A DNA stretch of 64,000 bases from Carpediemonas membranifera BICM (taxonomy: Eukaryota > Protista > Fornicata), in assembly GCA_019828565.1 (NCBI GenBank), contig JAHDYR010000002.1:372001-436000 (forward strand). Direction: 5' to 3'. A program made the translations under genes and the position numbers. Positions 2,677-57,207 of the stretch are shown here, piece by piece (the first letter of the stretch is position 1; every line of letters starts with the position of its first letter). The notes beneath the pieces are model-generated. The model did not search any database. It was not told where the DNA came from and worked only from the letters and a program-made list of their open reading frames with translations.

Positions 2677-4324
2677 ATGGCCAACAAAGACAAGACGGCT
2701 CTTGATGCATTGACAGCGGCCCATAAGCTATCAATCACTACCACGAACAGTATTGCAGGCGATGTTCCCTCGCTCATTGACTGCGCATGCCGACGCCAAT
2801 TGGAACAAGCTTCACTGATGTCCAGAATGCTGTTCGCGTTCAGGACGTTCAGGAGTAGACATGCTACCAACGATACACCGCAAGACGCCAAGAAACTTGA
2901 TTCCCTCACCGCCATGCTCTCCGAGACCCCCCTCTCGAGCCAGCCGCGCAAGTCCTCCTCGACCGCGCCCGCTCGATCATCACCAACAGCCCCCCGCTGT
3001 CCATGAACGTCGAGCTCGCGGCGGGGCAGGCGCTCCCGGCCGCCCTGCACACACTCAACCAGGGCGCGGTGTGGGCGTGTCTGCTGGGTGGCGGGGCCAA
3101 CCCAGACCTCGAGGACAGGGTGCTGGAGGAGTATCCAGAGGAGTGGCCAGACGCCATCGAGATGCGTGACAAGATCTACAAGGCTCTCACGCCCGAGGCC
3201 AAGTGCCTCTGGTTCCTCTGCCGCAAGTTCTTCTTCACCTGGAACGTCGCCGAGAAGGACGGCGAGAGCTGTCAGTGGAATGCATTCGGGAGATGCTACC
3301 ACCACCGCATGTACATGGGCCGACTCTTCATGCTCTGCATTGATGATTACGACACCTCTTTCACTAGGGCCAGAATGCCCAGGGCCCTCGAGGTCTACAG
3401 CGACGGGGCCACCCACATCGCAAGGACGCCCAAGGGCCTGTGGGGCTGGGGGCATAACGATGTGGCTCACCTGGGGTTCAAGACATCTGGCTTCGTCGAC
3501 CCGACCCGCCTCACCTTCCCAGCTGCCCCAAGGTCACCGAGCTCGAGGCCAGCCTGCCCCCCTGGGAGAAGCACAGGATGGTGACTGATGTGTCGATGAA
3601 GGGATATCGGACGTTCATCCTCACCCCAGTCGGCACTGTCATGGCCGGCTTCAATGCTCAGAGATATGTCGGCCCAGTCGACCGGGCGATCAGGAATCAC
3701 TTCCACCCAGTCGCTGTGCCACCTGGCTTTGTCCCAGATCACATCATGCAGGGTAGCAGAGTTGCCATCCTCTCCATGGGCGATCGGCAGATGATCAGCG
3801 GGAGCAACTGGGATGGCCGCCTGGGACTCGGGCACGAGAATTGGGTGACCGGCTTCGTCGACCTGCCCTTCAGGGTTGACCGGGTCATGTCCGAATGGTT
3901 CTTCAACATATTCCTCAGCGGCCGCCAGCCGCTCTTCGCCGGGATGGTTCTCAAGCACATCGCCCAGTCGGGCCTGCTTCCGGGATTCAATCAGCGCGAC
4001 ATCTGCCTCACACCCACCCCGCTCCGGTTCCCTGAGAGGGTCAAGGGGTTCTTCGCATCAAACTTCGACCTGATCTGGGTCACCGAGGGCAAGAGCCATT
4101 ATTGTAAGCATCATGAAGAACCCATCATTCTCCCCTTCGAGGCGACAGCTTTCAGCAGTTGCAGCTTCTGTAAGTGCGGCCAGTGGTTCAGGCCGTTGAA
4201 AGACTTGGATGAAGCTATTGAGATGGAAGACTGCGAGGCGCCGCCTCGTTCAGATGTGCATATGATCGTCACCGTCGACGTCGACCCGTGGACCCCGGGC
4301 GCCGAAGAGTCGACTGAATTGTAA
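2677..4324 (+). pseudogene. Dispersed RCC1/BLIP-II-like family, copy C1 (N-module type A; two 1-bp frameshifts at C-runs, possibly sequencing errors)
   Basis: Near-identical framework to five other copies, with RCC1-like GLWGWG..LGF and SGSNWDGRLGLGH motifs. Frame breaks at C-run 2927-2932 and CCC 3518-3520 join ORFs 2614-3006, 3003-3584 and 3578-4324. Confidence 0.75.
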
Positions 4325-4679
4325 AGTGATATTGACTCCAGTTGAGTCGGGTCCGAGTCGGCTTCCCAGCGATAAATCACAGCTGAACGCGACTACTGGC
4401 GGGAAGGCTTGAGAATGGTACGGGTATCCCATTCGTGGTACCCTAGAGACTAGAGCCTTAGCTCCTCGCCACGTGGCACCAACAGATCCACCGTGTCACT
4501 TTCCTGCCAGCTGCGGCATCCCAGCCGACCTCGGATTCACATATGGCGGAGAATGACGTGATTTGCGCGTCTATCCGAGTTGCGATGCTCGGGTGTCATG
4601 CTAATCAACTGATTATGCTGTAAAGATTGGTTGCAGGAAATGACATGCGCGACGTATCTCGCTTCGTTTGACAAACAGA

Positions 4680-7526: not shown

Positions 7527-7957
7527 GGCTGTGTCGCGTGTACTTTTATTAAAAATTCATGTGGTATGGGATTATGGCGGACAGGCTATGGCCTAGAGAG
7601 CACGCCTTTGATATCAGCTAGTGGAGGGCACAGATCTTGCACTTCGCACCACATTATTGAGCGGCCACCTTGTTCCGCCAGTGGTCATGATGACGAGCGA
7701 CGATAGCCAGAACCGGAGGCCAACCAACAGCACTAGGTCAACTGCTATGGTGCTCTTCCCAGTGCTCTCCCGGTTATCTGAGATGACCGAGATTGGTTGT
7801 TAGGATGTCCCCCCAAGACCAGGGGACACTGGGTCTGGCCGAGATGTTCCGCTCACCCATGCTCACTTTACTACTTTCTAATTCTGCGAGCTGAGCCATT
7901 CGGCTTTCCCGGTTGCCATCAGGTTTATGAGCACCCTGGACCCTCGGCTGATGAACT

Positions 7958-9609
7958 CTAAATGGGGATTTTAGTTGCGGTTCTGATGACTTGCTGGAGT
8001 AGAACTTTACAGAAGAACTTTACACCGACCTTTACATGAGTCTGAAGATGTCTATCTGTCGAGACGGGCATCTGAATGCCCGTCTCGCCCGGGGTCCACG
8101 CGTCGACGTCGACAGTGACGATTGTATGCAAATTTGAACGAGCCGGCACCTCGCACTCTTCCATCTCAGCCACTTCGCCCGAGCCATGTGACGCCTCGAA
8201 CCACTGGCCGGCCGGGTTGCAGAAGGAGCCCTTACAGAAACTTGTCGCTTCGAAGGGGAGAATGATGGGTTCTTCATGATGCTTACAATAATGGGTCTTG
8301 CCCTCGGTGACCCAGATCAGCTCTTGGCGTGATATGAAGAACCCCTTGACCCTCTCAGGGAACCGGAGCGGGGTGGGTGTGAGGCAGATGTCGCGCTGAT
8401 TGAATCCCGGAAGCAGGCCCGACTGGGCGATATGCTTGAGAACCATCCCAGCGAAGAGCGGCTGGCGGCTGCTGAGGAATACGTTGAAGGAATCTGACAC
8501 GATCCGGTCAACCCTGAAGGGCAGGTCGACGAAGCCGGTCACCCAATTCTCGTGCCCGAGTCCCAGGCGGCCATCCCAGTTGCTCCCGCTGATCATCTGC
8601 CGATCGCCCATGGAGAGGATGGCAACTCTGCTACCCTGCATGATATGATCTGGGACAAAGCCAGGTGGCACAGCGACTGGGTGGAAGTGGAGCTCGTTCT
8701 CCACCTTGACTGGGCCGACATATCTCTGAGCATTGAAGCCAGTCATGACAGTGCCGGCTGGGGTGAGGATGAACGTCCGATATCCCTTCATCGACACATC
8801 AGTCACCATCATGTGCTTCTCCCAGGGGGGCAGGCTGGCCTCGAGCTCGGTGACCTTGGGGCAGCTGGGAAGGTGAGGCGGGTCGGGTCGACGAAGCCAG
8901 ATGTCTTGAACCCCAGGTGAGCCACATCGTTATGCCCCCAGCCCCACAGGCCCTTGGGCGTTCTGTCGATGTAGGTTGACCATTCGATATAGACTTCGAG
9001 GGCCCTGGGCATTCTGGCCCTAGTGAAAGAGGTGTCGTAATCATCAATGCAGAGCATGAAGAGTCGGCCCATGTACATGCGGTGGTGGTAGCATCTCCCG
9101 AATGCATTCCACTGACAGCTCTCGCCGTCCTTCTCGGCGACGTTCCAGGTGAAGAAGAACTTGCGGCAGAGGAACCAGAGGCACTTGGCCTCGGGCGTGA
9201 GAGCCTTGTAGATCTTGTCATACATCTTGGTAAGGTAAGCGCCCTGGTTGAGTGTGTGCAGGGCGGCCGGGAGCGCCTGCCCCGCCGCGAGCTCGACGTT
9301 CATGGACAGTGGGGGGCCACTGGTGAGGATCGAACGGGCGCGGTCGAGGAGGACTTGCGCGGCTGGCTCGAGAGGGGGGATCTCGGAGAGCATGGCGGTG
9401 AGGGAATCGAGCGATGCGGCACTGGTCGGTGTATTTGTGGTCTCTGCGTCGTGGATCGCGGGCATTTGCTCGTCGAAGTGCCTGGAGAAGGCCTCTTTGA
9501 GCAATGTGGGGACGTCCCCGGGGATCGAGGCGGTGATGGCGACTGAAAGACGGAATGCGGAGATAAGCACCTCTCTAGCAGCAACATGCGTGGAATCAGC
9601 GCTGCTCAT
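7958..9609 (-). pseudogene. Dispersed RCC1-like family, copy C2 (N-module type B; internal deletion after NQGA; one frameshift)
   Basis: ORFs 8809-9609 and 7958-8812 are joined by a 1-bp loss at GGG 8867-8869. Homologous to C1 and C3-C6. C-terminus extended past a fold-back at 8060-8087. Confidence 0.75.
8060..8087. repeat. Perfect 12-bp inverted repeat (fold-back) at the 3' end of copy C2
   Basis: CGAGACGGGCAT-ctga-ATGCCCGTCTCG read directly from the sequence. Confidence 0.9.
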
Positions 9610-9833
9610 CGCTCCCGGCGCTCAGTTCAGCGGATGTCAAATTCTGACTGCGGACTCGCCGACCGCCAGCCGTGAAGCCGACGTGGCGCCGCGATACACG
9701 CTCACAGCTGCGATACCAGCCGGAGCTGTCTCCCCAAGCAGCCGATGGAGGGCTCGCTTCACTCTGCCCAGCGGGTGTCTCAAGATGTTCACAACAGTCT
9801 TTATCACTCGGCGCCCGGGGTCCACGCGTCGAC
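8086..9833. repeat. 22-bp perfect direct repeat (8086-8107 and 9812-9833) bracketing copy C2
   Basis: CGCCCGGGGTCCACGCGTCGAC occurs at both positions. Confidence 0.9.
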
Positions 9834-9871
9834 ATCGAACCCCATTAAACCTTCACATCAACACAACACAA

Positions 9872-12800
9872 TCAGCCCAACTCTTTCTTCGGCCTCAGCG
9901 CGCAGACGATGTTGTCCCATGTCCCCGCGCCCCCAGTCACACCACCGACCTCCTCGGGGAACGCTCTTGGTATATGCGCAGACACGCGAGCGAGCGCGTT
10001 CCTCGCATCGACGTGCTGAAGGCCGGCCATTCGCATCTGCGACGCCAAGTTCCTCAGATCGCTACCCCAGTCGATTGCACGTGTCTTCTTCACCACGGCG
10101 AGCATAGCCTGCGTCTTGTCAGGGCATACCATGCTGCCAAAGACTGTAACAGTATCTGTGGCCGCAGTAGGGCCTCGGTTGTTGGCGAGCATGAGAAGGC
10201 AGCGGAGGATCTCGTCGCTAAAGGCGTCAACGGCACTGGCAATGGCGAAACAAGTGGCCACGAATTCGCTGGCGGCGTCAACCATCTCTGTCCGCCCAGC
10301 GCACTGAGTTTTCATCGTCATGTAGCCCCGCGACATGAAATTAAGCGCGCGTTCTTGGAAAGTCGGCCGCTCAAGCAACGGGAAGACCCGAACACGCGGC
10401 AAAGACTCGAGACCACTGTTGCTGTCGCCGGGATACTGGAGAATTAGTAAATGGAAGCCGGAGGACACCCGGGCATCCGAGACAGAGTGCAGCAGTGTGA
10501 GCAGCAGGTCAGTGTGGACCGGCTTGACCGAGGAAAGAACGGGCAAGCCGCGTTCAATGGCTGAAGTGACGGTGGCAGCGAGCTCGGCGTTAGTCTGGGG
10601 GAGGTAGAGCCTTGTGCCCGAGTATGAGCAGCTCAGCGGCTCAATGGCCGCTGCTGGGTCAGTTACTTCAACAACGAGGGCGTGGTCAATAGCGGGACTG
10701 TTCTCAATGGAAGAAGCGAGGAATCTGAAGAGATGGTCCTGCTGGTACAATGGACTCGAGAGCAGCAGGCTGGTGTTCACGAGCTGCATGTTGTACGTGG
10801 CGCTGAACACGGCTTGAGAGAGCATCGCGGAGACAACACTGAGTGTCCCTGGGACGAGGGCGCGAACAAGGCAGAGAAGGTCGATGGCGCTGAGCTCGAC
10901 GGTGGTGCTGGCCTCTCTAGCAGTGAGCATGCTCTTGCTGATGTCCTGGTGGAGTCTAAACGGTCTTGGTGGGCCATGGTGGATGTCCCAGCCTGATCGG
11001 AGACCACCGATCCACTCTTGCCAGGCCTCTTGCTCGGTCTCAAGGGAGTTAAGAAGCGCGTTGTTGGCCGAGAAGCGGGGATGGAGGCTGACGAGCCGCT
11101 GGACCTCCTTGTGCTGGTCGACGCTGAGCCAAGTCTCCTGGGTCGCACTGGGAGGAGAGGGGTCGCCCCTGATGAAAGGAAGCGCGTCTCCTGCAGTAAT
11201 CTTGATAATGTCTTCGAAGATTACGACACGGTCGTCAGGTAACTCGAGCGTCTCGATCACAGCCACACAGGCGGATAAGAGTAGCGAACAGGCTTGGACC
11301 AGTCCGGGTGGTGCAACTGCGGCCAAGGATTGAAGCATATTGGAGATGAATATCCGCATAAAGTGCCTCAAGTTATTGGGGATTGACACAAGGGCGTCTG
11401 AGCGCGTCTTCAGGTCGGCGCAAGCGATCTCGAAATTCGGCCCAATCATTGGCCAATGAAGCTCCCCACCGACAACGTTAGCCACGAGATACACGACCGC
11501 AAGAGATCTTGTTGTCACCTCGAAGGTCGGGGCAACAGCGAACAGAGCGTCTTGGGCATGTTGCACCGCCTTGTTGTGCGCAGTCCTTGCTTCCGACAGA
11601 CCAGTGAGAGTGTCGTCGTGGGTGTCAAGACCGCCGACGGCAGTGCTATACGCCGCGAGGATCTCCTGGTTGTGGTGCTCGAAGCCCGTACGGCAGACTT
11701 CCTCCCGGCTCGAGCGGAGGGTGCCTAGGCGATCTGGCTCGACGATTCTCATCATATCGTTCGTCATCTGTGCGGCAGTGCGCTCGAACGAGTCTGGGAG
11801 GACGAGAGGGGAGAGGTGAGAGCCTAATAAATGACTGCAGTTGAGTCGGGCAGCCTCCATCGACTGGGTGTGGAATATGAGCCTAAACTGCCGATGTACA
11901 CGCGTTACAGTGGCACCAAATCTGATATAAATACTGTGGGCGGACTTCAAGAAGCTGACCAAGTCGTGGAAGGCAATCAGGTCATCAATCTCTCTCTGGC
12001 TACTGTGTGTGTCAGTGATGGTCGCCGACACGTCCGTCTCCGCGAGTTCCATCTCCATTGCAAGTCGTGGTGAGTCGAGAAGTGACTCATCAGAGTCGGA
12101 AGCAGACTCCTGTGAGAAGTCGGTTGTGGTGTTGAATACGGACATATCAGCGTCCATCGACGCCTCTTGTCGCTCTGAGATCCTTTCCCAAGTCTCTAGG
12201 GGCACTTCATCTTGAGCTAGGGCCATCTTATACTCTGGGGAAGCAGAGACGAACCACTCCAGCTCCGACATGAGGGCTGTGACAGTGGGTACGGCGTCCT
12301 TGGTGCCGACACCTGTGAGAATGAGGCATGATCCTACCGCTGCGGCCTTGATGACAGTGTCGAGAAGGGAGCGGACAACAAGGCTCCTGGACTGGCCCTT
12401 AACGGTGGTAGGAGCGTACACCACGGTCGTCTGCCGGCCTTGGGTCGACTCCATCGCACGTACAGCATCCACGAGCTGCGGGATTTGGGTACCGCGGCAA
12501 AAAAGCAGGGGGTGGGTGAAATCTGGTGCTCTGAGTACACGAGCGGGCCATCCTTCCACGCTGGAGACTGACTCGAGAGATAGGAGCTCAGGCGCGGGTC
12601 TCTTGACGGCCTTAGGCCAGGCTTTAGGCAGTAGCGGGTCTGAAAAACCGGCGACAGAGAGCAGACGCAGGGCTGGGGAGTGGTGCGGGCTTCCAGCGAC
12701 AAAGAGAAGGGCGTTCTCGCCGTCAACCACATGCGGTGCAGGTTCATAAGCTGTGGCGGACTTAAACTGCTGGGCACTGGCCCTCGACCTGGGCGTTCCC

Positions 12801-15800
12801 ACCATCATCGAGGCCGAGGAGATCGATCTTGACCTGGCAGTTCGAAGAGGGGCAGTCTGGGCGCGTCTGATCTCCACGGGTGGGTAGTGGAGGGACACAG
12901 TGGTTACGTCAGCCAGACGGGAGTCGCCTAGGAGGATGTCAGAGACGTTGGCCTGCTGGGTAAAGTGCACGCCATGGCTGCTGAGTAGGAGGAATGTCTG
13001 CTGTAATACCGCGCGGCGGGCGGCGTCGTCCATTCCAGCAAGCGCGCAAACCCAGATACCCGCGCGGAGCGAGTCTCCCGGTGCGTTTTGGATCATGGAA
13101 GAGTATGTGGACGCGATGGCCGCCCATAGGCCGCGTTCGTTGAAGAAGGCCTTGACCATAGCGATCGTGCGTGCGTGGTCAGCTGTGAGCTCTGTGATGT
13201 GCTTGGAGACGTCGTCGCATTCGTGTTTGACTGTATCGAGCTTCTCGAGGTTCTCTTCAGCGCTGGAAATCACGTCGGCGAGCTCGGCTTCTACTGAAAC
13301 CAGCTCTTCCTTCTCATTTTCAACCTCCTCTCTGAGCATCTCGGCCCGAGCCTGCTTGGGCTTGACCTCGAGCTCTGCAGACTTGAGCTTGTAGAACGAG
13401 TTGACCCACTTGCCCAGGTCTGCAGCAACAGTTGGTTTCTTGGGTCGACCTTGCATGGCCGGGTCACTGAGTCTCTCGCCGACTTCTCTGAGAGCTTGTG
13501 TGGGGACCCCCTCGATGTACTCGAGACTCTGAACAAACTTGGTGTCTGAGATCATCAGTTTGGCCTCGGGCCAGTAGTCGAAACCAGTCTCGCGACCGTT
13601 CTCCATGATCACACGCGGAGTAAGTCCCTTGATGATGCAGATGCACTCGAGGATTGTCATAAGCGAGCCTGTGGGCTGCTTGGCTCTGAGAGCACCGATA
13701 TCTGCTCGTTTGGCTGCTACGAGTCGATTGAACGACTTGGTCACGCCCTCGCTGGAGCTGGAAATGAGCTGCGCCACTGCTGTGGTCAACGCCTCGATCT
13801 CAGCACTCTTCTCAGACACAGACTCGCGCAGGCGTGTTGCCTTGGCGGTGAGTTCGTCGCGCTTTGCCTTGTCGGCTTCAGCAACCATCCTCATCTTCAA
13901 AAGCTGCTTCTTCGACTCTTCAAGCAGTGGCTCAAGCCGGTTGATCTCCGCCAAGATTGCCCTCACACTACGCTCCGCCCGCTCAAGGCGATCCAGAGCC
14001 ATTGTCAACACAGTGTGGTCATGCTGTAAGGTAGTCAACCGCTGCTGGTAAAGAGCCGCGACAACCATGCCAGTCTGCTGAATAGCAGAGGGCAGAGTGA
14101 CAGACGACACAGTGGTAGAGGCAAAAGCGGTCTGATAGACTTCGACGATTACACGCAAAAGTCTGTGTGGCAGCCTGAGACCGTGAATCAGGGGTAGGTG
14201 CGGACTGAAAGACGGTGCTGGCAGGGCAACAGTGGTGATGCCGGAAGGCCGATGGGGTACGCAACACCGCTCGAGCAGTGTGAGTGCGGAGTGGGTTGTG
14301 AGGCTGGGCAGGGCGACCGTGAGCCCGCGGCGTATGAACCTAGAGGCATTCGGGAAGTCCAGGGCCATGGTGTGGAAGATGGCAGGGTCAACATGCATGA
14401 TTACAGTGACGTTGCCGCAGACGCGGTGTCGTAGGGTCTTGTACGGGTCCCCAGTCTCTGAGGAGAAGAGTTGGCGTACGGCGTTCTTCTCCATGGGCGA
14501 CATGTCGGGGAGATATCCGTGGATCAGCCAGGAGACGTCGCGAAGCATCTTGGAGTGCAGGCTGGGGTTGGCGCAGGCAGGGATGACCGCATATGTCTTG
14601 CCAAGGGCTGCACACGCGACAACACCGACAAGATACTGGCGCCACCGTTCAGTGGGAGTTTCTAGGGTCTCGACAATCTTGCGGGGGGCTTCTACAGCCG
14701 ACGGGGGTCTGCTGCTCGACGTACTCTGGTCTGGCGGTGCGAGTGAGCGCGTGGTGGGTCGACTGGCTGGTTGAGCCGCGTCATCACGGCCCAAAGCCTT
14801 GTGGAGCAGAGCAAAGGCCCGTCCATCGGCATGACCAGTCTCCTCGAGATCATCATGGGCCTCCCTGGCACTGGCGACTGCGTCCTGCAGCTTCTTGCCG
14901 TGGATGAGCGGATGGGCCAGGCCTCTGTTGTCATAAACTACGCCGATGGCGTCTTCGACGTGGGAAAGAAGGCCGACGGCGTGGAGTGTCATGGCGTGCC
15001 CGCCAGTGTGGCTGTTTGTGACAATAGTGACAAGTCGGGGATGGAATTGTGTCGCGTGTAGTCCGATAGCGTCGCCAGTCACCAGGGTATTGTGGAAAGC
15101 AGTCGGGGGATGCACCATGGGCGCTATCGTGGCCATAATCGTGTCTACGGCTGGCAGGACAGGCGGTGTCCCAGCGGTGAGCACGGATTCGGGAAGAAGC
15201 CGCTCGACGAGTGTCTTGCTGCTGAACCCGAGCACTGGGATGTCCGTCTTCGCGAGCCTGTCTAGCGTCTCCTCGAGCGTGTGCTGCTCAAAGTCGATAG
15301 CGGGGTCAAGCTGGCATGCCACATGCCTGAAAGCGATCGGATCCGATAATCTGTCCAAATCTCCGTATTCATCGCCAATTGAGTTACTCACGAGGCCCTG
15401 AACGATGTCCTTGTAAGTGCTTCCATGGTAGCAAGCAGAGAGTACGTCTTCATGCAGTGTGACCCAGATGACAGCAGGGTTGGCCTCCTCAACGAGCATG
15501 ATCCGTGCAAAGGCTGCGAGAAGCTGAGTAACTCGGCCGTGGGTGAAGATAGAGGCGACACCTGGGACGACCTCGCCTGCTGTATGTAGGACGGTGTAGA
15601 GCTCAGCGCTGAGAGCCACGCCGACCCTCATGGCTGCGACCATTCGTGGTAGAACAGGGTCATCGATGATACCCATACGTTTGATGATCTCGGCCCCAAT
15701 ATACTGGACACGGGCGCGCATGTCACGCTTGGACGGATAGTGACAGGGGACGCAGACGGATCGAGCGAGGGCACGCCGCCTGATCGGGTCGACCTGGATG

Positions 15801-18800
15801 TCAGTGGACCTGCGCGAGGGTATCTCCATCTGAACTACGGTTGAGAAGAAGTCAAAGAACTGCCTGGCGTCGTTGGTGGCACTGCTGCTCGATATAGCGG
15901 ATTTGGTGTCCATGATCTCGGACAGCATGCCGTATGCTACTGCCCTGTTACAGCTGGCAGCGTCTGTAGAGATGTTAACAGCGTCTAGCTGTGCAATAAC
16001 GAGTGTGGAAAACGGCTTGTCGTCCTTTGGTTTGAAAGTCCTGGGACCGGACGCCATGAGCTTCGTGTCAATGAATGAACCAAGCATGGATTGCACCAGA
16101 GTGCCCGGGGCAATATCGGACTCATAGACTGACGCTGGTTCGTACGGCGAGAGATCCTGCTCGGCACCGCTGGTGTTGGGTAGAGTGAGCATTGTTACAG
16201 AGCCTGTCTCGCTGCACTTGGCCGCAACAGCAGCAAGGAGGTGCTTCGAACCGGAGCCAACGACATGGCCTAGGATGACAGGCACATGGATGGCCTGGAG
16301 CATGGGTATGACGTCCATAGCGTTCAAGTCAGCAGCACACTGGGGTGGGTCAACTACTGGACGGGTGAGAGAGGACATGTCGAGGTAGTCGTCATGGAAA
16401 ATAGTAGAGGGCTCGTAAGAGACGGCGAGGCGGATGGTGTCGACTCGGTCGGAGGAGGACATGGTAATGAATGTACCGTAAGCTCCCGAGAAGATCGACG
16501 AGTGTGGTCTCTCCGGGTCCTTGGCAGAGCTGGGGACGTCGAGGAGGAAGCCGTCGCCCGTGGCTAGCGCAGAGCACGCCTGCTCGCGGAACCAGGACTC
16601 GAGCTTGGCCACGCGGTCTGGTGCGATGCCCGAGAGATCGAGCATGGTCACGACTGACTTGATAGCAGCCGTAGTCGCCTCAATCAGGGCAAGATCACCA
16701 CACGCGATACGTACAGCCAGGGCCTCGCCCTCTTGGTTGGCTGGGAGCTCGTCTCTATGAGCAGAAGTCCTCGCATCGAGCTGCATGAAGATATCCCCGC
16801 GAGCCTGGGTGGAGGCCGAGATCCGGTCCCGAATCTCGGTGAATAGACGGTGAAGCGTGGCCGCGGCGACAGAGGCGATTGTGCGAGCAGCGTGGACTCC
16901 AATCGTCACGCGATACACGCTCTCGATGCGGTCGTAGCCAAGCAAGAGGCTGGTCAAGACAGCCTCCAGCTGGCGTGCGAGGCGGGTGTTGGGCGACCAC
17001 TTGCTGAGATCGACGGCGCCTCTCTCCTTCTTATCAAAGACTTCGAGCAGGGTAACATCGTCGATCCCGAACGGGTCAGCTGCAATCTTTGCCATGCGGG
17101 CGTCAAACTCGCGACGGAGTGCGGCTTCAGCATATATGACTGACTGTTCGATCATATGAACCCTGTAGGACGCGAACACGGCCGGTGGGAGCTGGCCCAT
17201 ACCCGTAGACTCAATCATGATGATCGTGCTGGATGGAATAGTGACTGTCGTACCGTTTGAGAACTGGATGTCGAAGTTGGGCTGGATCGCATTAATCAAA
17301 CCAGCGAAAGACTCGATCTCACCGTCGAGGACGATGAAGTTCGCCTTCTCCTGCCGCTTCAGGTTCATCCTAGAGGGGGTAACCGAGAGCGTAGGAGGGT
17401 GCTGCGGCTGGGGAATGGACTCACCGACCAGGGCAGTCTCCTGCTTGTAACTGTGTGTGAGTAACGCCCGGAGTTTCGCGGCAGTACCTGGGTCTCCTCG
17501 CCCCAGGTATTCAGCGGAGAGAGAGGAGATGAGTGTCTCCAGGGTGCCTGGTCTGAAGCCTGACTCGGAGTCGTAGAAGCCCCACATGAGGCCGCCTCCG
17601 ATGGCTTCTGGGCAAATGACGTACTCGTCGACTGAGAAAGGGACTTGGGCGTTCGTGGGCACGAGGATTTCGGCAAAGGGGTCCTCGACTGACCTGCCCA
17701 GGACAGAAAGGGCTTCGAATGCTAGGCGCCGCACAGTGCTCTTCCCGGCCAGAGGAGGGGCGGCGATAACGACGCCTCTGCTCACAGTGATGTCTCTCGC
17801 AGTGTTTTGCTGTGCTACGAGTCGAATAGACTTCATCACGTCCACCACGGTGTTGACCAGACCCGTAGTCTGCATGATCTGCTGGCGGTCCATTGCTCGT
17901 CTAACACAACGACGGAGGAGTGCGGTCTCAGCTTCTGGCGAGGGTCTCTGGTCCTCTGTCTCGAACACCCGATCCATATAACTCAGGGCAGAGTCGTATA
18001 GGCGGGCTGGAACCGAGCTGAGCCACTCGTGCTTGAAAGCTGCCTTGAAGGCGCGGTATTCGTCGTCCTCGTCGTCTTCAAACAGGACGCGGAGTGCGTA
18101 TTGGAGCATCTGTAGGAGATAAGCACTGCGGGCTACTCCCTTGATGCCTCTGCCGAACATGCCCATCCACTCTGCGACGATCTCACCGATAGCCTCAGCA
18201 TTACGCACCCCATGACTCTGAAGTTGGACCAAGTCGAGCACTTCAGGCGAGGGTGGGTGGAACTGTACTGGTCGGGCAGTGAGACGGAGGTCTGTGTGGT
18301 ACTGGGGGATGACACCACTAATGAAGAGCTTGGTCGTGGATCTGAAAGGGATGTTCGTGCCAATGAGGTTAACAGTGGAAGCACGGGCCGCAAGGGCGTC
18401 CCTGACGCTCCGTATGACCTCTGCTAGGACAGAGAGTAGGGTAGGGGGCGAGGCCTGGTCCACCGTGATCACTAGCCAAAGTCCGGCGGCGACAGCACCC
18501 CTGATGTAGCGGAGGACAGTGGTCATGAGGTGCTGCGTGCACGCGTCGTGCCTGGACTGTCCGAATGGGACAGTGGGCACGCGTCTGATCACATGGCCGG
18601 TGAGGGCTCCGTAATCCGTGTACATAGTCTTCTTACCCATGGCAAGCTGGCCGGAGAGGGCGTGGACGGGGATGCCAGGGATGTGGATGGTCTCGTGTAG
18701 GGCATCGAGCATGGTCGCGAGGGGGCGGACGAGCGGTGGGGCAAGCTGGTAGCCGAAGTCGACGCATGAGGCACCAAAACAGATAGTCGGCCGCTGATCG

Positions 18801-21800
18801 TTGAGGTAGACTCGCATATGAGACCTCCAGTGGGTAGAGTCCTCGAGCAGGTCTCTGAGAACGTCCACGTAGTACAAGACAATGTAGTTCAACGTTACAA
18901 CCATTCGACGGACGAGGCTGGAGGTACGCCGGTCCGAACTCTCAGGGACCTTGCGGTACGTGGCCAAGAGATGAGGCCGAAGGGACGTGCAGAGGCCGAG
19001 GAGTCTTGCTTCTATAGCGATGAGTCCGTCCTTGGGGCTGGGTGACTCTAGCGCCGAGTCGATTAGCGTGGTGACCGCGAAACCAATGCCCACGGGTATG
19101 AGCGCTTGCGGCCACTTATAAAGAGCCTGCGTCACTGACTCGTCAGACCCACTCTCGAACGCCTTGGCGTAGTCTCTCAGCGCAGGCTTAGCCGACGAGT
19201 ACAAAGAGTCCGAGATGGCGGTGCTCAGTGCGGAAATCCAGTCGGTACACTTGCCCTTGGCACTAAAGACTGGCGGTGTGATCACCACAGTCTCACCGTA
19301 CACCGTGCGCACTCCGTTGTAAAGATGGGCCATGGGGATCCCCTCGTATGTCTTCAAATCAATCTCATCAGGCTGGGCCCTGGATAGCCCGGTAGCTCCA
19401 GGAATCATGGCGATATATGGACTCTGGTGCAGAGTTCCTGGGTTTGCTGTGGTAGACAGGAAGTCCATGAGCTCGGGATCGCTCAGGAAGAACAACCAGG
19501 GGCATGCTAGTCGTTCAGCTTCAAGGAAAGAGGATAGTGCTCGCGTGAGCTTGTCGTACCTGGTGATATAGCTGTCGACCTTGTCTTCCTTGAGCTCGGC
19601 TAGCAGAGAAGAGAGGCGAGGGAACTGGGAGATGACTGCGCCGACTTGTTTCTCCCACTCACCGGCCACCTGGTCGAAGCACCTAGCGTCGGCGGGGAGC
19701 TTGGCGCGGACCTCAGCGGCGGTGTACAGCGGTTTGATGCTCGTCCACATAGTCTGCGCATGTGAGAGTTTTTCAAGAAGTCTGGAAATATTGCCCGTCT
19801 TCCGCGTCCAAGCGGCAAGCTGTTCCTTGAACGCAGAGGCGTATGTCGAGTGGAAGAGGAACTTGACTCTGAACACCAGGTCTGAGATCTTCGCGAGGAC
19901 TTCTGGGATGTCCGAGATGACTGTGGTGCGGTCAGCGTCTTCGTGCTCGGTAAGCTCCTCTTCTTCTCCTGTAGGTGTGCCCCAGCCCCGCGCAGTGTGT
20001 GGTAGAGAGGCCTGCATGGCAGTCTCATCCTGGACATGGAGCCACAAGTTGTAAGGAATGGTGTGAAGCATGAGTTGCTCGAAGGAAGACTTGATCTCAG
20101 CCACACCGTGCTCAACTTCGAGCTCGTGGGATGCTTGGGAGGCTATGCGTTGAATGGCGGCGATATACGGGGTGAAATCGTACTGCTCGAGGATCGAGGC
20201 GAAGGTCATTCCGTACGCCGGCTTGAACGCGAAGCCAGTCTCCTTAGCCAGTGCTTCCCAGTGACGGTCGCGAAGCATGGGATTGCACAGAGCAGCGATA
20301 AGCGGGAGATGCTTGCTGAAGGCCGAGAAATCTTGTAGAACTCGTTCAGCGGTCCGCATGGGCGAGCCATAGTCAGAAAGGTCTACTTTCAGACGACGTA
20401 GCGTAACGCTCTCCTCGTTGATTAGGTTCTTAGCCTCATCGGGGTTCTGCACGAGGAGCTCGCCGTACATCAAGGCAGATTTCGTGACCGTCCAGTGAGC
20501 AGACACGTGCCACACGTGACACACGTTTTTGATGAGCTCAACGGTCGACCTGATTAGGGAAAAGTCGGTCGGAGTCATGCCAATGATACGCTCGTGTCTG
20601 TTGAGGACGGCACACTCATCGAACAACGTGTCCATCTCCTCCCGGGTTCGGGAAACAAGTGTGTAGTTCTCGTCAGCGGAGCCACCTTCAAGGACAAGGG
20701 CGCGCTGGATGCTGGGTCCCATCTCCGTGAACGATTCTTTGATACTCCGCGCCTTTTCCATAAAGTGCACACTGAACTGGTGACCGGCCGACTCTAAACG
20801 GAGGTTGGTCAGGCGCTGGAGTCGGCCGATGCGCTCGGAAGCGCCAATGAGCTTGTAAAACGACTGGGTGACTGCATCTCGCGTGTAGTAGCGGTTCTCG
20901 TGTAAGAGGTTGAGTACAGGACGAAGATCTGACTCAATCGACTCATGGAGTTGGTCAATGGTAGGCCCCGCCGCCTCTAGAGCGTCCCTGAGCTTGACAA
21001 TATCATCGGGAGACCGCGGGATCCGATTGAGTTTTCTCTCAAAGTTGACTTGGGCCTTGAGACTCCTAGCAACTCTGAGCGACACTCTCTGGTGCGTCTC
21101 ACTCAACAAGTCCATCTTGGCGTGGTGAAGAATGGAAATAGCTGTGTATTTCAAGGGGTGGAGCGAGAGGGCAAAGGGGGGGAACTTCATGAGCCCTTGG
21201 ATTGACTCAATATCTGCAGTCATGCGGGTGATATCGGACATGGTTTGTGACACCACGTTGAGGTCGACCGCGTCGCTCTTGAGAGGCTTGGTAGGCCATG
21301 AACCTCCTGTGGAGAGCATGATTGCACGCCGCACGTGCCTCTCGTTGACAATGTTGACGATGTGAGGGCCTGAGTAGCGCGGGAAAGCTCGTTTGAAAGC
21401 CTCACTGAGTCCTACGCGGTAAAACTGGGAAACGGCGGCCGCTGCAGGTCTGATCTTCGTGACACACTCCTCTTGAACACGGACGAGCGCCTCTCCGACT
21501 ATAACTTCAAGCTTCTCGAGCCGACTGGCCACCCGCTGCTCGATTCCCGGCGGCAGCTTGACCACTCCGCCCGGCCCAGCAATGTTTTGGAACGAGTCAA
21601 CCATAGTATCCCAGGAATGGTGGAGGGAGTCCATGATATCCTCGTGCATCGGATGCATCTCCACACTGAGCGTATCAAGCAGTGGCCCAAGAGCAATTGG
21701 AGCGTCTGTCCCGGTGATAAAAGTTGCCATGCGAGAGGACGCGACCAGGGTGTCTAGCTCTCTCAAGACAGTCGGCTGGGCTGGGTTAGCCGAGGTGACC

Positions 21801-25970: not shown

Positions 25971-25982
25971 TCAAAATAGCAA

Positions 25983-32893: not shown

Positions 32894-32919
32894 ACTCTAC
32901 GGGACAAAACCCGACCTGC

Positions 32920-45529: not shown

Positions 45530-45570
45530 TGTAATCTATGTAACTTTGTCTGATTTCTATGTAAAAATCT

Positions 45571-46180
45571 GGTCTGGGCCTGGCTCAAGCCATTCCTTGC
45601 CAGTCGACCCGCGGACCTGCCTGGGCTGACTCTGGCGAAGCTCCATCAGATGATGTGCGCCTTTGTGGGGACCTGGCGAGGCAGGACGGAGGTCGAGACT
45701 GAGCGGCTGCTCATGGATGCCGTGGGGCAGGGGCTATATACACCCACCCCGCTTCGGTTCCAAAAGAGGGTCAAGTGGTTCTATGCTGATGGTTGGAATG
45801 TAATATGGACCACTGAGGGCCAGACTCATATATTTAGTTTATCAATATCTAGCTGCTTCTACACGACCATCTGGAAAAAGTCACCTCACTTTGCGGCTTT
45901 TGTCAAAGACTACATCCGCTGTCGGGGGCCATTTGAGGCGACTGACAATGGCAGCACACTTTCTTGGATTCGCAATTCATTCAAGACTGGCGAAGTCACT
46001 GGCGGCAAGAGACATATTCGGCGCAAAAATCCTGAACCGATTGTATATATCCTTCGAGATAACAGCTCTCAGCGGTTCCTACGACGTCTCACTGGACTTC
46101 GAGTCAACAAGATGGCAAGATTGCTCCTTCCACGACCTGGCCGGCCGGTGGTTCGAGCCGTTCGAGCCTTGCAGTACTGA
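45571..46180 (+). pseudogene. Chimera: 165 bp of the APC2 3' end fused to the 3' half of a diverged RCC1-family member
   Basis: 45571-45735 equals 2244-2408 with one substitution. It is followed by TPTPLRFQKRVKWFY...IWTTEGQTH, PFEAT and (other frame) DLAGRWFEP, all family motifs. Confidence 0.8.
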
Positions 46181-46342
46181 CCAGGGTATGACGCGGGGCA
46201 GACTGTGGAAGCCAGCAAACTCGTCGGATTAGCTCCTCCGCGGGCCCTTCACAGAGCCAACAAACATTGCCAGCATCACTGCAGTCACACTCTCGGTGTC
46301 GTCTTCCCAACACCCAACCAAGTCAAGGATTTAAACGCACGC

Positions 46343-48124: not shown

Positions 48125-48352
48125 ACTTAAGAAGCAAGTGACACGTTTTCAAGCATTTTAGTGTCAAGTCCACGTTGGTCAACTGGGGCCCACGGCGCCT
48201 CGTCATTACGGCACAACACAGCCACACGCTCCAAGCCCCATATGCCGTCAGCCCCAGCCTTCCCAAGCCCATGCCTGATCTGATTCGATCCGATCTTTTT
48301 CTCGCAAAGATATCACAATCGTCTTTTCATTTACCATACATGTATACATACC

Positions 48353-49386: not shown

Positions 49387-49547
49387 GTTCTCGCGCGAGT
49401 CCAGAAGTCGACCAAACAAAAGAGCCCAAAAAGAGGGATGCGTAGCTGAATAAGGTGTGCGTGCGTCATCGCATACTTGAAATGTCGTTACTGGCAGTGG
49501 TTGACGACTCCGCACTTTAAGCGAGCTTTGTCTGAGCTTTCGAGTCT

Positions 49548-50053: not shown

Positions 50054-50191
50054 GCCCTGTCGCGGATTAAAAAAGCGCTTTTGAGATTTGTTTAATGATG
50101 GCGAAGGTGGTGGGCTTGGTTGGAGCTTGCCTCGAGGTGGGCCCTGCTGTCCTGTGTGGTGCGAGCAGTGTGACTCGGCGACTTTGAAGCG

Positions 50192-51196: not shown

Positions 51197-51433
51197 TATA
51201 CATAAAGTAACATGCGGAGATTTATGGAGGTTTGGGTGCTGATGTTCATCCTTTCGCGTGCCTTGCTTGGTTAGGGTTGATAATCATTCTCTCTGAGAGC
51301 GAATTTGAAAACAGCCGGGATACAAGGTATAGCAGCTCTTGGAGCCGACAAGGGCATCGTCATTCGAGTCAGAGTTCGGCAGGTGGCAGAACATTTATGT
51401 TTACGCATTTTAAGGTTCACATCCTCCACACAT

Positions 51434-54400
51434 ATGCGGCTCATTGCGCTAGTCCTTGCGCTTTTTCTGGTTGCAGTAAGCGCAGCACAGGACATTAACC
51501 CCGCCTTCTATGAAAAGGCGCTGGAGGATAACGTGGATATCTTTGTCAGCTGCCAGCAAGAGATTATTGGCATTAGCGGCAACGAGAACCAGATTACATG
51601 CTACTTCTTTGGTACCAAGATCGATGTACCCACGACCAACCCCGTTACAACGGTTACCACGGCCTTTGGCACTTCCACGAACGTCGGCTACACCCACATT
51701 GGCACTAACGTCCGCGAGATCTTCATCTACCACGCCACTTTCGCCGTTCCCGACCCCGCCAACCCCGTTTACGCGTACTACGACTGCAACTGGAAGTTTA
51801 CCTTCACCACTGGTTCGTATTCCATCGCCATGGACACGCTTCTTTCCATGACCCACGGCACGGTCACCTTTGACGCCAACACCAACATCGTCTACGTCGC
51901 CGGCGACAACTCTGCCGGCCAGATTGACACCAACACTGGCGAGAAGACTTACGATTCCCCCTCGAACCACTGGAGCACCGCCCCGTTCGAGTACCACACT
52001 GTCGACTACGTGGAAGTCGGCGACAGCACGTTTGTGATCACCAACGAGGGCGAGCTCTGGACGCTGGGCGGCAGCAAGTACCCCGGCCGGACGCTGGCCA
52101 CCACTGATGTCTGGCTTCAGGTGTTTGCTCCCAACGGCAACGCCAACATCCTCTTCGACGGCGTCACTGTCGGTGATAACCACGCCCTGTTCAAGGCCTA
52201 CGACAGCATCACCCTCCGCACATATGTGTACGTCGCCGGCACTGGCCTTGCCACAAACTGCACGACTCCGAACAAGTACAAGCTCACCGAACTCACCCAG
52301 TTCAACGACCTCGACGTTGTAGACATCGAGGCTACATCCAGAGCATCGTACATCCTCCTTGCCGACGGCACGCTCTATGCTTGCGGTGACAACACCCTCG
52401 GCCAGCTCGGTGACGGCACCACTGTCTCCCGCTCCCAGTTCAAGCCCGTCAACCTCCCCGCTGGCTTTATCCCCTACGCTCTCGGCCAGGCCCGCGGTGA
52501 CAACATGTTTGCCATCAACTCTGCAGGCAAGGTTGCCGCCTGGGGTGACAACTCTGTCGGCCAGCTCGGCATCAACTCCGAAGCCCAGTACCAGGGCACC
52601 CCCACCTACGTCAGCGGTGTCAGCGGCTCTGCCATCCACGTGGCGGCCGGTAAGGACTTCACCCTCGCCCTCTCTGATGACGGGCTCCAGGTCTACGGCG
52701 TCGGCAACGTCAAGTACACAGGCACCGATCCCGCCGTCGTCACTGGCAAGTACATCAAGGCCTTCGCCAAGTCTACCCTCGTCCCACCCAACACCGCCGC
52801 CATCTCTACTGGCTACGTCCACACCGTGGCCCTCGTCACCGGCGACACCGCATCAGTCTACACCTGGGGCGACAACGGTTCCGGCCAGCTCGCCCAGGGT
52901 GAGGGCGCCAAGTCCACGGTCACCCCCACCATGGTCCCAGCCCTCTCGGGCACGGCCACCCAGTCCCGCCCCTTTAGCCGAGTGTATGCCGGCCAGGAGC
53001 ACACCATTGCTATGGAGTCGACGGACATGCACGATCAGGCCTTTTACGAGATTTACCCCGACGGCATGGTCAGAGTGGCTTCGCTCTCTGGCACGGTCGG
53101 CAAGTCTATCCTTGGGGCGGTCGAGCAGTACGGCGCGACGTACTCTTCTGTGCACTCTGCTACAGTAGATATGGTTGACGATATCTTCTGGATCTGGTCC
53201 GATTCGCACTATCCTGTTACTGACGAGATTCTCCAATTCACTATCCGCAACGAGGCTCGCGAGAAATCATTCCGTTTCGCAATCCCCGCCTGCGTCACCA
53301 TCAAGCCCAAGGTCCGCTCCATCGACCTCTCCTTCGACGGCGCAGCATGGAACGTGGCCCTCGACCTGACCCACGGCGTCATCAACCCCCTGATGTCTCA
53401 GGTCTCCATGGACTGCATGGGGCTGGTGTCGCACCAGATCACACTCAACGCCATGGACGTGGGCGCGGGGTCCGCCTGGGACCTCAGGCTGTCTGCCATG
53501 CAAATCATCGGCGGCAAGGCCAGGATGCTGTACTCCTACTACTCACAGTGCACGCTGACTATTGACGGCGTGACCATGTACCAGGGCGACATCGGCACCC
53601 CTCTTGCCCTTGATGAGACGCTCTCCACGTTCTCCCTCAAGATGGAAACCCCTTATGTCCACTACGGCGGCCAGATGAACGCATGCATCGGCCCTCGTGA
53701 CGACTACAACCGGTTCCTCCCCATGAAGAACGCCGACCTTGTCGCCAACACCCAGTTTGTCGCAGTTTACCCCACTACTGTCTCCTCCGAGCAGACCCAG
53801 GAGCTCTTCTTTATGGGTCACGCCCCCACCTTTATCTACGACGAGGACCACGAGCGCTACTGCGTTGCAGTCCAGACCAACTTCCCCGTCTCTGGGCAGA
53901 TTCAGGCCAAGTACAAGGGCCAGATCATCGGCCGCGAGAAGTTTGTCCAGATGCGGGCAGACTCGACCAAGAGCGCCATCACCATGGTCGACCAGGAGTC
54001 CGTTCTCACCGCTGACGTCCCCGTGACGTTCTGTGCCAACGCATATGACATTCAGGCTGTCCGTAAGATCACCAGCGCCCCTCCGCTCGCGTTTGACTTC
54101 TTCTTTTTCAACCAGGACACCGGCAACAGCCTTGTGCTCAACCCCAACCTCATCCCCGCGACTGGCGACTACTGTGTCTCCGTCGCCTTCCTACCCGGCC
54201 AGTACACCTACTCTGCGACGTTCAACGGCCTCCAGACTCTCATCGGTGGCGGTACGTTCGCTGTCAAGGCGGTACCCACGTCCACGGGCGGCAGTGGAAG
54301 CTCCTTCTCCGGGAGTGGTATTGAGGTCGCCCTCGCCGTGACTGCCCTCGTACTCGGCTTGCTCATCGCCTGCGTCGGGCTCATTGGCGGTGCAGTCGTT

Positions 54401-54556
54401 GCTGCTGGTGGCGTCCTCTATGGCGTTGTAATCGGCAAGGGCATCCCATCCGGCACGGGCCGCTCGATGGCCTCAGCGGTTGACCGGGCCGACGAGCAGT
54501 TTGGTCTCCTTCGCGGTGTCCAGAACGCGGATTACCTGGGTGAGGATGCGCTGTAG
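51434..54556 (+). CDS. Secreted/type I membrane protein with RCC1 repeats
   Basis: Signal peptide MRLIALVLALFLVAVSA. RCC1 repeats LYACGDNTLGQLG, AAWGDNSVGQLG, YTWGDNGSGQL. C-terminal hydrophobic helices. Confidence 0.8.
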   Translation: MRLIALVLALFLVAVSAAQDINPAFYEKALEDNVDIFVSCQQEIIGISGNENQITCYFFGTKIDVPTTNPVTTVTTAFGTSTNVGYTHIGTNVREIFIYHATFAVPDPANPVYAYYDCNWKFTFTTGSYSIAMDTLLSMTHGTVTFDANTNIVYVAGDNSAGQIDTNTGEKTYDSPSNHWSTAPFEYHTVDYVEVGDSTFVITNEGELWTLGGSKYPGRTLATTDVWLQVFAPNGNANILFDGVTVGDNHALFKAYDSITLRTYVYVAGTGLATNCTTPNKYKLTELTQFNDLDVVDIEATSRASYILLADGTLYACGDNTLGQLGDGTTVSRSQFKPVNLPAGFIPYALGQARGDNMFAINSAGKVAAWGDNSVGQLGINSEAQYQGTPTYVSGVSGSAIHVAAGKDFTLALSDDGLQVYGVGNVKYTGTDPAVVTGKYIKAFAKSTLVPPNTAAISTGYVHTVALVTGDTASVYTWGDNGSGQLAQGEGAKSTVTPTMVPALSGTATQSRPFSRVYAGQEHTIAMESTDMHDQAFYEIYPDGMVRVASLSGTVGKSILGAVEQYGATYSSVHSATVDMVDDIFWIWSDSHYPVTDEILQFTIRNEAREKSFRFAIPACVTIKPKVRSIDLSFDGAAWNVALDLTHGVINPLMSQVSMDCMGLVSHQITLNAMDVGAGSAWDLRLSAMQIIGGKARMLYSYYSQCTLTIDGVTMYQGDIGTPLALDETLSTFSLKMETPYVHYGGQMNACIGPRDDYNRFLPMKNADLVANTQFVAVYPTTVSSEQTQELFFMGHAPTFIYDEDHERYCVAVQTNFPVSGQIQAKYKGQIIGREKFVQMRADSTKSAITMVDQESVLTADVPVTFCANAYDIQAVRKITSAPPLAFDFFFFNQDTGNSLVLNPNLIPATGDYCVSVAFLPGQYTYSATFNGLQTLIGGGTFAVKAVPTSTGGSGSSFSGSGIEVALAVTALVLGLLIACVGLIGGAVVAAGGVLYGVVIGKGIPSGTGRSMASAVDRADEQFGLLRGVQNADYLGEDAL

Positions 54557-54607
54557 AGTGGTGTGCGGATAAAAAAGCTTCGTATTTGCATGAGGGGGTC
54601 ATTTAAC

Positions 54608-54707
54608 TTGGTGACTCGGGTGTGGCGGCTGAGATGGTTGAGTGTGAAGCGTCCAGGGATTATTGGTGAGATTGTACAAGCCGAGGTCGACCCGTGGATA
54701 CCGGGCC
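54608..54707 (+). pseudogene. Degenerate 3'-end remnant of a diverged RCC1-family member, immediately upstream of the copy C6 leader
   Basis: GDSGVAAEMVECEAS and, frame-shifted, IVQAEVDPWIPG resemble the family C-terminus GSGEVAEMEECE...IVTVDVDPWTPG. Confidence 0.55.
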
Positions 54708-55246
54708 CGCCTGATAAAAGCTATCCTTCTTTGTGGGTGAACGCTGGCCTAGCAGACCCAGGAGCAAGGGAAGCATCAGTGGTATCAGCGAGGGCTAGCC
54801 CAACCACTCAACCTGCGCGGGCAAACTCGACCCACACTACTAGCGGCGTGGTAGGCCCGTCGTTGCCCTCTGTAAGGGCGACCGCGAGATCGAGCTTCTG
54901 TCGCGTTCTCGAGTCATTTAACCTGTGTCACTGACGTCACTACCAATCTCAACCTTTACGCGAGCAATCATAAATTGGATATTGCGTTCGTCATCCCCGC
55001 GAGGAGGCCACGATAGTTGGAGGACGTGCATCGCAGTAAACCATAAACGGGTGTCAGGTCCTGGGCTGAAGGCTGGTCTGGTATCGCAATGGTCCAAGTC
55101 AGTCGGCGATCGAGTCATTCTCGACGATCGTTGTTCAGGAACCTTTTCAGCAGCTGGACGCCTGCATTAACGATGTTGATACTGAGATTGCTAAGCTGAA
55201 CGGCATGGTGCTTCCAGACGAGGAGATCGATGCCCGCCTCGCCTGA
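54708..55246 (+). repeat. ~540-bp 5' leader shared near-identically with C5 (38033-38571, inverted) and partly with C4 (30595-~30856)
   Basis: Direct sequence comparison. The ORF track gives the same spurious peptides at both loci. Confidence 0.9.
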
Positions 55247-57207
55247 ATGGACACCTCTCGCGCTCGCCTCGCGGCCATGCGCTCCTCAGGGCCCAAGAGT
55301 GGCAGCGACGTCCAGCACGATGCAATGAGTGGCCTGCATTCCGCCATGTCGCGCGACTATGCGGATTTGCCAGGCGACATTCCCACTCTCATGCGAGAGG
55401 CCTTCACTCGCGAGATCGGCGAGGAGTTCCCGGACGAAGACGGTGATGCAAATCAGGCCACAGCCGAGGAGGTGACTAGCGCGCTCTTGGCCCTCGACCT
55501 CCACCATCGCAGTGCCATCAACTTTGTCAACCGGGTTGTCTCGATACTGTCACACGCCTCCCCCCCGCTGTCCATGAACAGACCCATGATACCCGGCGGC
55601 ACTGATTCCTTGCCACATTCTACAAACGATGCGCTTATCTCCGCATTCCGTCTTTCAGTCGCCATCACCGCCTCGATCCCCGGGGACGTCCCCACATTGC
55701 TCAAAGAGGCCTTCTCCAGGCACTTCGACGAGCAGATGCCCGCGATCCACGACGCAGAGACCACAAATACACCGACCAGCGCCGCATCGCTCGATTCCCT
55801 CACCGCCATGCTCTCCGAGACCCCCCTCTCGAGCCAGCCGCGCAAGTCCTCCTCGACCGCGCCCGCTCGATCCTCACCAACGGCCCCCCGCTGTCCATGA
55901 ACGTCGAGCTCGCGGCGGGGCAGGCGCTCCCGGCCGCCCTGCACACACTCAACCAGGGCGCGGTGTGGGCGTGTCTGCTGGGTGGCGGGGCCAACCCAGA
56001 CCTCGAGGACAGGGTGCTGGAGGAGTATCCAGAGGAGTGGCCAGACGCCATCGAGATGCGTGACAAGATCCGCGACGCTCTCACCCCCGAGGGCAAGTGC
56101 CTCTGGTTCCTCTGCCGCAAGTTCTTTTTCACGCTGAACGTCGCCGAGAAGGACGGCGAATGCAATCAATACTATTGGCGAGAAAGATTCTACCACCACC
56201 GCATGTACATGGGCCGACTCTTCATGCTCTGCATTGATGATTACGACACCTCCTTCACTAGGGCCAGAATGCCCAGGGCCCTCGAAGTCTGTATCGAATG
56301 GTCAACCTACATCGCCAGGACGCCCAAGGGCCTGTGGGGCTGGGGGGAGAACAAACATGGTCAGCTGGGGTTCGAGTCATCATATCGCGAGTTCGTTGAC
56401 CTGACCCGCCTCATCTTCCCCGCCTGCCCCGCGGTCGCGGAACTTGAGGCCAGCCTGCCCCCCTGGGAGAAGCACAGGATGGTGACTGCTTTGTCGATGA
56501 AGGGATATCAGACGTTCATCCTCACCCCAGCCGGCACTGTCATGACTGGCTTCAATGCTCAGAGATATGTCGGCCCAGTCGACCGGGCGATCAGGAATCA
56601 CTTCCACCCAGTCGCTGTGCCACCTGGCTTTGTCCCAGATCACATCATGCAGGGTAACAAGGTTGCCATCCTCTCCATGGGCGATCGGCAGATGATCGGC
56701 GGGAGCAACTGGGATGGCCGCCTGGGACTCGGGCACGAGAATTGGGTGACCGGCTTCGACTTGCCCTTCAGGGTTGACCGGATCATGTCCGAATGGTTCT
56801 TCAACATATTCCTCAGCGGCCGCCAGCTGCTGTTCGCCGGCGAAGTTCGCAAGCATATCGCCCAGTCTGGCCTGCTGCCAGGATTCAGTCATGACGACAA
56901 TTGTCTCACACCCACCCCGCTCCGGTTCCCTGAGAGGGTCAAGGGGTTCTTCATATCACGCCAAGAGCTGATCTGGGTCACAGAAGGCAAGAGCCATTAT
57001 TGTAAGTGTGATGCTGAACCCATCATTATCCCCTTCGAAGCGACAGCTTTCAGCAGTTGCAGCTTCTGTAAGTGCGGCCAGTGGTTCAGGCCGTTGAAAG
57101 ACTTGGATGAAGCTATTGAGATGGAAGACTGCGAGGCGCCGCCTCGTTCAGATGTGCATATGATCGTCACCGTCGACGTCGATCCGTGGACCCCGGGCGC
57201 CACATGA
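55247..57207 (+). pseudogene. Dispersed RCC1-like family, copy C6 (tandem N-modules C+B; one frameshift before a 436-aa core)
   Basis: ORFs 55247-55900 and 55897-57207 are joined at C-run 55821-55826, the same lesion as in C1. Confidence 0.75.

Follow-up and report, generated by a model that had tools for sequence, protein, structure and literature searches.

Borrelia vlsE, trypanosome mosaic VSG and lamprey VLR are mosaic genes built by segmental copying, and it was to these that an earlier reading made from the letters of the DNA (the sequence-only reading) likened six RCC1/BLIP-II-like genes, C1–C6, of the free-living anaerobic flagellate Carpediemonas membranifera, proposing a cassette-shuffling system. 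The 64,000-nucleotide (nt) stretch of DNA that holds them, here called the window, is positions 372001–436000 of contig C3 of a 24.24 Mb genome assembly in 69 contigs whose source is described in PMC8516963; in what follows "contig C3", "contig C13" and "contig C67" are genome contigs, C1–C6 are gene copies in the window, and labels of the form L0xx are family loci. Like vlsE, VSG and VLR these genes are mosaics of conserved and variable segments, but the proposed likeness to a cassette system is not supported on closer comparison: the family shows no signal repeats and, for the five alleles tested, no silent cassette archive, its exchanges run on into N-terminal modules and flanks, and its products are not secreted or membrane-bound. 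With type I plant NLR clusters (lettuce RGC2, potato R1 and coffee SH3-CNL; PMC3113787) the family shares clustered chimeric paralogs, frequent exchange, birth and death, conversion whatever the orientation, and variation on exposed binding residues; it differs in being a propeller family without NB-ARC or leucine-rich repeats (LRR), in a probably haploid protist, and in its very short tracts. With the fungal hnwd/NWD non-self receptors (Podospora het-d and het-e as well as het-r; PMC2873952, PMC4986451) it has in common an intracellular β-propeller, few hypervariable positions per blade, concerted framework evolution and swappable N-terminal domains, but it has no NACHT or HET domain, it counts more than 160 loci against ten, and the blades within one of its genes are dissimilar, so that exchange must pair whole genes in register rather than one repeat with another. 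No NB-ARC or NACHT NTPase was found in either sequence or model, and because it lacks this NTPase the family belongs to neither the plant NLRs nor hnwd. RCC1, RPGR, UVR8 and the HERC RLD share its fold and blade motif, and its variable loops match the face used by UVR8; it stands apart from them by 11–18% identity, a single Pfam repeat, a novel N-terminal part, mass expansion and hypervariability. We consider it probable that this is a family of cytosolic binders diversified by unprogrammed ectopic recombination among clustered paralogs.

Family size and mosaic structure

C1–C6 are a subset of 16 close copies that lie across ~310 kb of contig C3, in either orientation and interspersed with housekeeping genes. 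Genome-wide the family has at least 163 loci: a 32-nt framework block has 163 matches at no more than three mismatches, at least 100 of them exact, and these also form large clusters on contigs C13 and C67. Our DNA-level work covers the window and 30 family loci of one genome and one strain; L011 and L016, with divergent or truncated 3' ends, were omitted from most tests, leaving 14 analysed copies of contig C3. A profile search against 1.8 billion representatives gave distant full-length matches, of which the ten that we looked up all came from C. membranifera, and on these matches the RCC1-like propeller family appears to be specific to the C. membranifera lineage. In the literature we found no paper linking Carpediemonas or Anaeramoeba with RCC1, and none describing the family; an apparent precedent in Ostreococcus was dropped, the strain names concerned merely beginning with RCC1.

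An alignment of the six copies confirmed the near-invariant frameworks split by block alleles described by the sequence-only reading, and 18 of the 18 motifs that it quoted were present in the copies named. Its segments are mosaic as claimed, but they number about 19 with 2–6 alleles when 14 copies are compared, rather than about 12 with 2–4, and KVEN, given as a single allele of C2 and C5, proved to be two (KVENEL in C2 and KVENVY in C5); C5 also has private third alleles at three segments. Sequences are mostly 0–1 nt apart within an allele and 5–20 nt apart between alleles. That no combination is common to two copies held for 14 of 14 copies of contig C3, all with distinct haplotypes, and that no single tree fits was borne out by trees of gene quarters, which were better by 359 log-likelihood units. 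For the six copies the pairwise homoplasy index (PHI) was 0.122 against 0.479 ± 0.017 when permuted (p = 0.0005, the floor; 152 informative sites), with a minimum of at least 15 recombination intervals and four gametes in 36 of 78 segment pairs; for the 14 copies PHI was 0.197 against 0.694 permuted (p ≤ 0.001), with four gametes in 66 of 136 segment pairs. The more divergent copies of contigs C13 and C67 gave the same recombination signal, and the sharing of exact loop peptides, in groupings that conflict, is nearly limited to members of one contig.

Site incompatibility among the 14 copies rose from 0.04 at less than 10 nt to 0.49 at 40–80 nt and 0.90 beyond 640 nt, and a rise over so short a distance means that the tracts are short: linkage is half-lost by about 40–80 nt, and short tracts are exchanged among the copies of one contig. 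The mosaic goes beyond chance and homoplasy. Applying PHI and trees of gene parts, tests of the kind that the sequence-only reading had suggested, strongly supported recombination, and its central claim of segmental exchange among paralogs rests on PHI, the four-gamete pairs and the quarter-gene trees alike. Exchange is not confined to the loops, as N-terminal modules and 5' flanks are exchanged too; shared sequence reaches 5' by nested steps that run from −104 to −1193, the N-terminal modules derive from different subfamilies, part-converted alleles exist, and C2 and C6 carry remnants of a past tandem neighbour.

Predicted fold, variable face and selection

An AlphaFold2 model built on a 91-row alignment (predicted local distance difference test, pLDDT, 87.5) comprises a predicted four-helix bundle (residues 11–97), a helical linker (122–188) and seven four-stranded blades (190–530). 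The best folds returned by Foldseek were RCC1, RPGR, UVR8 and HERC2/HERC domains (E about 1e-10, Z 13–14.6), and sequence-profile matches were to RPGR and UVR8; the RCC1 repeat PF00415 was matched once (25.1 bits against a cut-off of 21.7), and the whole-domain score of PF25390 was far under its cut-off. As modelled, the propeller is by fold a member of the RCC1/BLIP-II superfamily. The N-terminal part had no specific match in sequence-profile or structure searches, its four-helix bundle, set beside the known NLR effectors (CC, HeLo, TIR, HET and MLKL-like), being generic (best Z 6.5, to ferritin-like folds). Reading the helical linker as an F-box was rejected, there being no Pfam or PDB profile match and the look-alike first helix not being conserved in distant members; an ankyrin-like reading was unsupported. 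The absence of a signal peptide claimed earlier was upheld, with no transmembrane segment either (maximum 19-residue hydropathy 1.1–1.6).

In a four-stranded meander the A-B and C-D loops lie on the same face. It is these loops that are hypervariable in all seven blades, with the B-C and D-A links nearly fixed (entropy 2.15 bits vs 0.66, p = 1e-23, 46 members). By profile alignment the variable loops correspond to the GWRHT and WNKF positions of UVR8, which are its dimer and photoreception surface (PMC4501546). The variable segments, newly identified here with the A-B and C-D loops of each of the seven blades, form a single face of the predicted propeller, a point that the sequence-only reading had proposed to check, and the diversifying β-propeller repertoire that it proposed is supported by the seven-bladed model and its hypervariable loops. 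In relation to Ran-GEF or β-lactamase-inhibitor activity, a face so hypervariable would speak against a single fixed partner.

When the variable sites were defined on other copies, the ratio of nonsynonymous to synonymous substitution (dN/dS) on contig C3 was 1.14 (0.71–1.98) at variable sites vs 0.36 elsewhere, and on contigs C13/C67 it was 1.34 (0.99–1.88) vs 0.31. Fourfold-site divergence on C13/C67 was 0.26 next to variable codons and 0.10 at a distance from them, which suggests that the loops are older than the frameworks, as would be expected if conversion homogenises the frameworks and selection keeps the loop alleles. A neutral by-product, in which a genome prone to recombination would duplicate and convert repeats of every kind and the loops vary for want of constraint, would agree with a dN/dS near 1 on the face, with flanks and neighbouring genes that are also duplicated and fused, and with the many broken copies. 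We nevertheless find this unlikely, as similarly exposed loops of the other face hardly vary in any of the seven blades, indels on the variable face preserve the frame (loop indels are multiples of three, and there are 0 stop codons in the family frame across 30 loci), variable codons are enriched for R, D, E, Y, W and N, and synonymous divergence is highest beside those codons.

Gene copies, reading frames and neighbours in the window

The six "genes" of the sequence-only reading are indeed six family copies, but not all are open in the assembly: 1-base-pair (bp) deletions lie inside the propeller in C1, C2, C3 and C5 and in the N-terminal part in C1, C4 and C6. The copies and their parts are listed below (N-module, N-terminal module; ORF, open reading frame).

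2677–4324, forward strand: C1, made up of a type-C N-terminal helical module, core and propeller, with 1 bp deleted near each of 2927 and 3520
7958–9609, reverse strand: C2, with a type-B N-module, an 81-nt in-frame deletion in the helical linker, and the shared −1 variant near 8867
8060–8087, reverse strand: 3' end of C2, which enters a fold-back palindrome of the C4-type ending with 11-bp arms
9610–9838, reverse strand: spacer 5' of C2, including a 27-nt remnant of a past upstream neighbour's 3' end (matches 8086–8112)
23308–24902, reverse strand: C3, with a type-B N-module and a private blade-1 C-D allele; 1-bp deletion near 24083
28628–30594, reverse strand: C4, with stacked N-modules A+B; propeller ORF 28628–29944 open
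36372–38032, reverse strand: C5, with a type-A N-module and private alleles at three loops; a C run near 37145 has lost 1 bp
45571–46230, forward strand: seventh, partial copy, an APC2 3'-end tract (165 nt) fused to a divergent blade 5–7 fragment
55247–57207, forward strand: C6, with stacked N-modules A+B; core ORF 55897–57207 open
56095–56127, forward strand: framework block KCLWFLCRKFF, near-invariant in the family; it is the block with 163 matches in the genome at up to three mismatches, at least 100 of them exact
56158–57114, forward strand: C6 propeller, holding 14 variable loops
56158 (1AB), 56230 (1CD), 56290 (2AB) and 56344–56394 (2CD), forward strand: C6 variable loops, blades 1–2
56488 (3AB), 56548–56601 (3CD), 56647 (4AB) and 56701–56754 (4CD), forward strand: C6 variable loops, blades 3–4
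56782 (5AB), 56839–56904 (5CD), 56950 (6AB), 57001 (6CD), 57046 (7AB) and 57085 (7CD), forward strand: C6 variable loops, blades 5–7

The deletions at about −77, −13 and +561 of the family frame sit in runs of 6–7 C, no RNA contig has the −77 or −13 deletion at the matching contig C3 positions, and they are probably nanopore errors. A −1 variant near +526 is common to exactly six contig C3 copies, C1 and C2 among them, and occurs nowhere else; an in-frame look-alike was assembled at four other loci, and from steps in RNA-contig depth one contig apparently crosses the +526 place without an insertion. To judge by the ends of RNA contigs this variant may be real, in which case about half of the contig C3 cluster would be pseudogenic yet still exchanging tracts.

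The arrangement of the remnant 5' of C2 resembles the tandem pair L013/L016, and the APC2-like donor of the tract at 45571 lies at 2244–2408 and is 99.4% identical to that copy, the fusion ORF encoding 176 residues. Close to each gene end the VDVD codons make up a 12-nt palindrome (4268–4285, 8102–8113, 28658–28669), and several unit boundaries fall within ~30 nt of it. An RNA contig over the gene adjoining C4 (28002–28674) differs at four places; the 3' flank of C4 is also found in L014, and part of the adjoining gene may be duplicated there. Elsewhere in the family, L027 and L029 of contig C13, separated by 5.4 kb, share 1,034 nt or more without a difference (a very recent duplication or a collapse), L011 (C3:446984 onward) continues from about nt 1100 in a 3' end that is only 35–40% like other members, and L007 has lost 19 nt and carries a foreign tail; L011 and L007 are chimeras with distant subfamilies. 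Between C1 and C2 (4668–7526) is a multi-PAS histidine-kinase-like protein with a HATPase domain, followed at 9872–22957 by a 4361-residue ORF which, judged by reading alone, is like a divergent dynein heavy chain. Two conventional RCC1-repeat proteins unrelated to the propeller family are encoded at 38663–40606 and 51305–54556, one with a dynein-stalk-like tail and the other with an apparent signal peptide and a C-terminal membrane segment, and 57342–64000 holds a large Cys-rich repeat surface protein whose tandem units (768 nt and longer) are 98–99.6% identical and which is frameshifted in the assembly.

Programming, mechanism and significance

A programmed or stimulated system would use a dedicated mechanism to copy donor loop segments, those of frameshifted pseudogenes included, into the expressed copies during a clone's lifetime, in the manner of vlsE, VSG or avian immunoglobulin conversion. 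Such a system would account for alleles that are letter-identical among copies and tracts that often span a single loop, for the state of the 16 contig C3 copies, of which around half look broken and six have the one −1 variant that is theirs alone, and for a 32-nt framework block kept identical in 100 or more loci. Against it, none of five alleles tested had a stand-alone cassette, the search for a partial-cassette archive finding three private alleles as single copies and two shared alleles solely inside gene-length copies; many paralogs also appear in RNA (RNA contigs come from many paralogs on C3 and C4, although contigs cannot rank expression or resolve single cells), exchange extends beyond the loops, and part-converted alleles are present. 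We detected no G-quadruplex, no recombination signal sequence, no 10-mer repeated within a copy and no flanking direct repeats, and the scanned ORFs included neither a recombinase nor a reverse transcriptase. Breakpoints in frameworks, which the sequence-only reading looked for, would arise from any homology-driven exchange and are no sign of programming. On this evidence a programmed system is distinctly unlikely. Three specific candidates were also set aside: the 27-nt bracket of C2 as an attachment (att) site or target-site duplication, being better explained as the remnant of a tandem neighbour; a diversity-generating retroelement, the allelic differences (AG 71, CT 50, CG 35, GT 30, AT 28, AC 25) having no adenine bias and the scanned ORFs no reverse transcriptase; and a lamprey VLR-like system, as this is a propeller with gene-length copies and not a set of LRR modules joined into an incomplete germline gene.

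That the mosaics are an artefact of consensus building or short-read polishing of near-identical repeats is highly improbable: although this is an R9.4 nanopore assembly polished with Nanopolish and Pilon, and leftover 1-bp deletions in C runs mark imperfect sequence at family loci, there are 83x long reads and unique genes between the 1.5–2 kb copies, Pilon substitutions number 3,483 genome-wide and the 14 copies by themselves contain 1,013 minority calls, three private alleles occur just once each in the genome and therefore cannot have been imported by polishing, clusters only 82–90% identical show the same pattern, and an Illumina RNA contig equals C4 at 28658–28892 (235 nt) with zero differences across 6CD, 7AB and 7CD, a match that is one haplotype and probably one data set and, as contigs can be chimeric, supports the phasing but does not prove it. 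The private alleles, the exact C4 contig and the substitution counts indicate that the mosaic is real, and short-read polishing is an unlikely cause.

Diversification by unprogrammed ectopic recombination thus remains our preferred explanation. The exchange itself is likely to take place in the course of homologous-recombination repair, by gene conversion or by replicative template switching; this would move tracts between clustered paralogs, broken copies would act as donors, conversion would homogenise frameworks with old divergent loop alleles persisting and reassorting, and selection for new binding specificities would retain those alleles. The nested 5' breakpoints, the tandem remnants, the fold-back end of C2 and the APC2 fusion all fit a general homology- or microhomology-driven template switching. 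As to function, we lean slightly towards recognition or defence, in which the face would recognise variable ligands of non-self origin, for example proteins of viruses or bacteria, and coupling to a conserved host partner would fall to the N-terminal part. C. membranifera is probably haploid, has lost Rad51A and has two Dmc1 paralogs, and recombination-dependent replication has been proposed for it (PMC8516963); a link between Dmc1-based recombination and the propeller family is plausible. It is unlikely, in our view, that Dmc1-only recombination-dependent replication actively reshuffles loop alleles within generations, with frameshifted copies as donors, to yield an anticipatory intracellular immune repertoire.

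Several points count against our interpretation. The evidence comes from one genome of one strain, and the dN/dS intervals include 1, so positive selection is not formally established. The one-face assignment rests on blade topology and alignment and not on measured coordinates, and the N-terminal part resembles nothing specific.

Immune recognition in free-living protists is largely unknown, and this family bears the evolutionary marks of the non-self receptors of plants and fungi, on a scaffold unreported in that role in the literature searched, and without an NTPase switch. The 16 paralogs, marked by about 19 allelic segments, amount to an internal reporter of the rate and tract length of ectopic conversion in a culturable organism, and this reporter bears on how recombination and replication proceed in C. 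membranifera in the absence of Rad51A and the origin recognition complex (ORC), while the loop alleles are a natural frame-compatible library of propeller binders. If reshuffling within a clone were true, the family would be an adaptive-like binder repertoire, neither NLR nor immunoglobulin, in a unicellular eukaryote.

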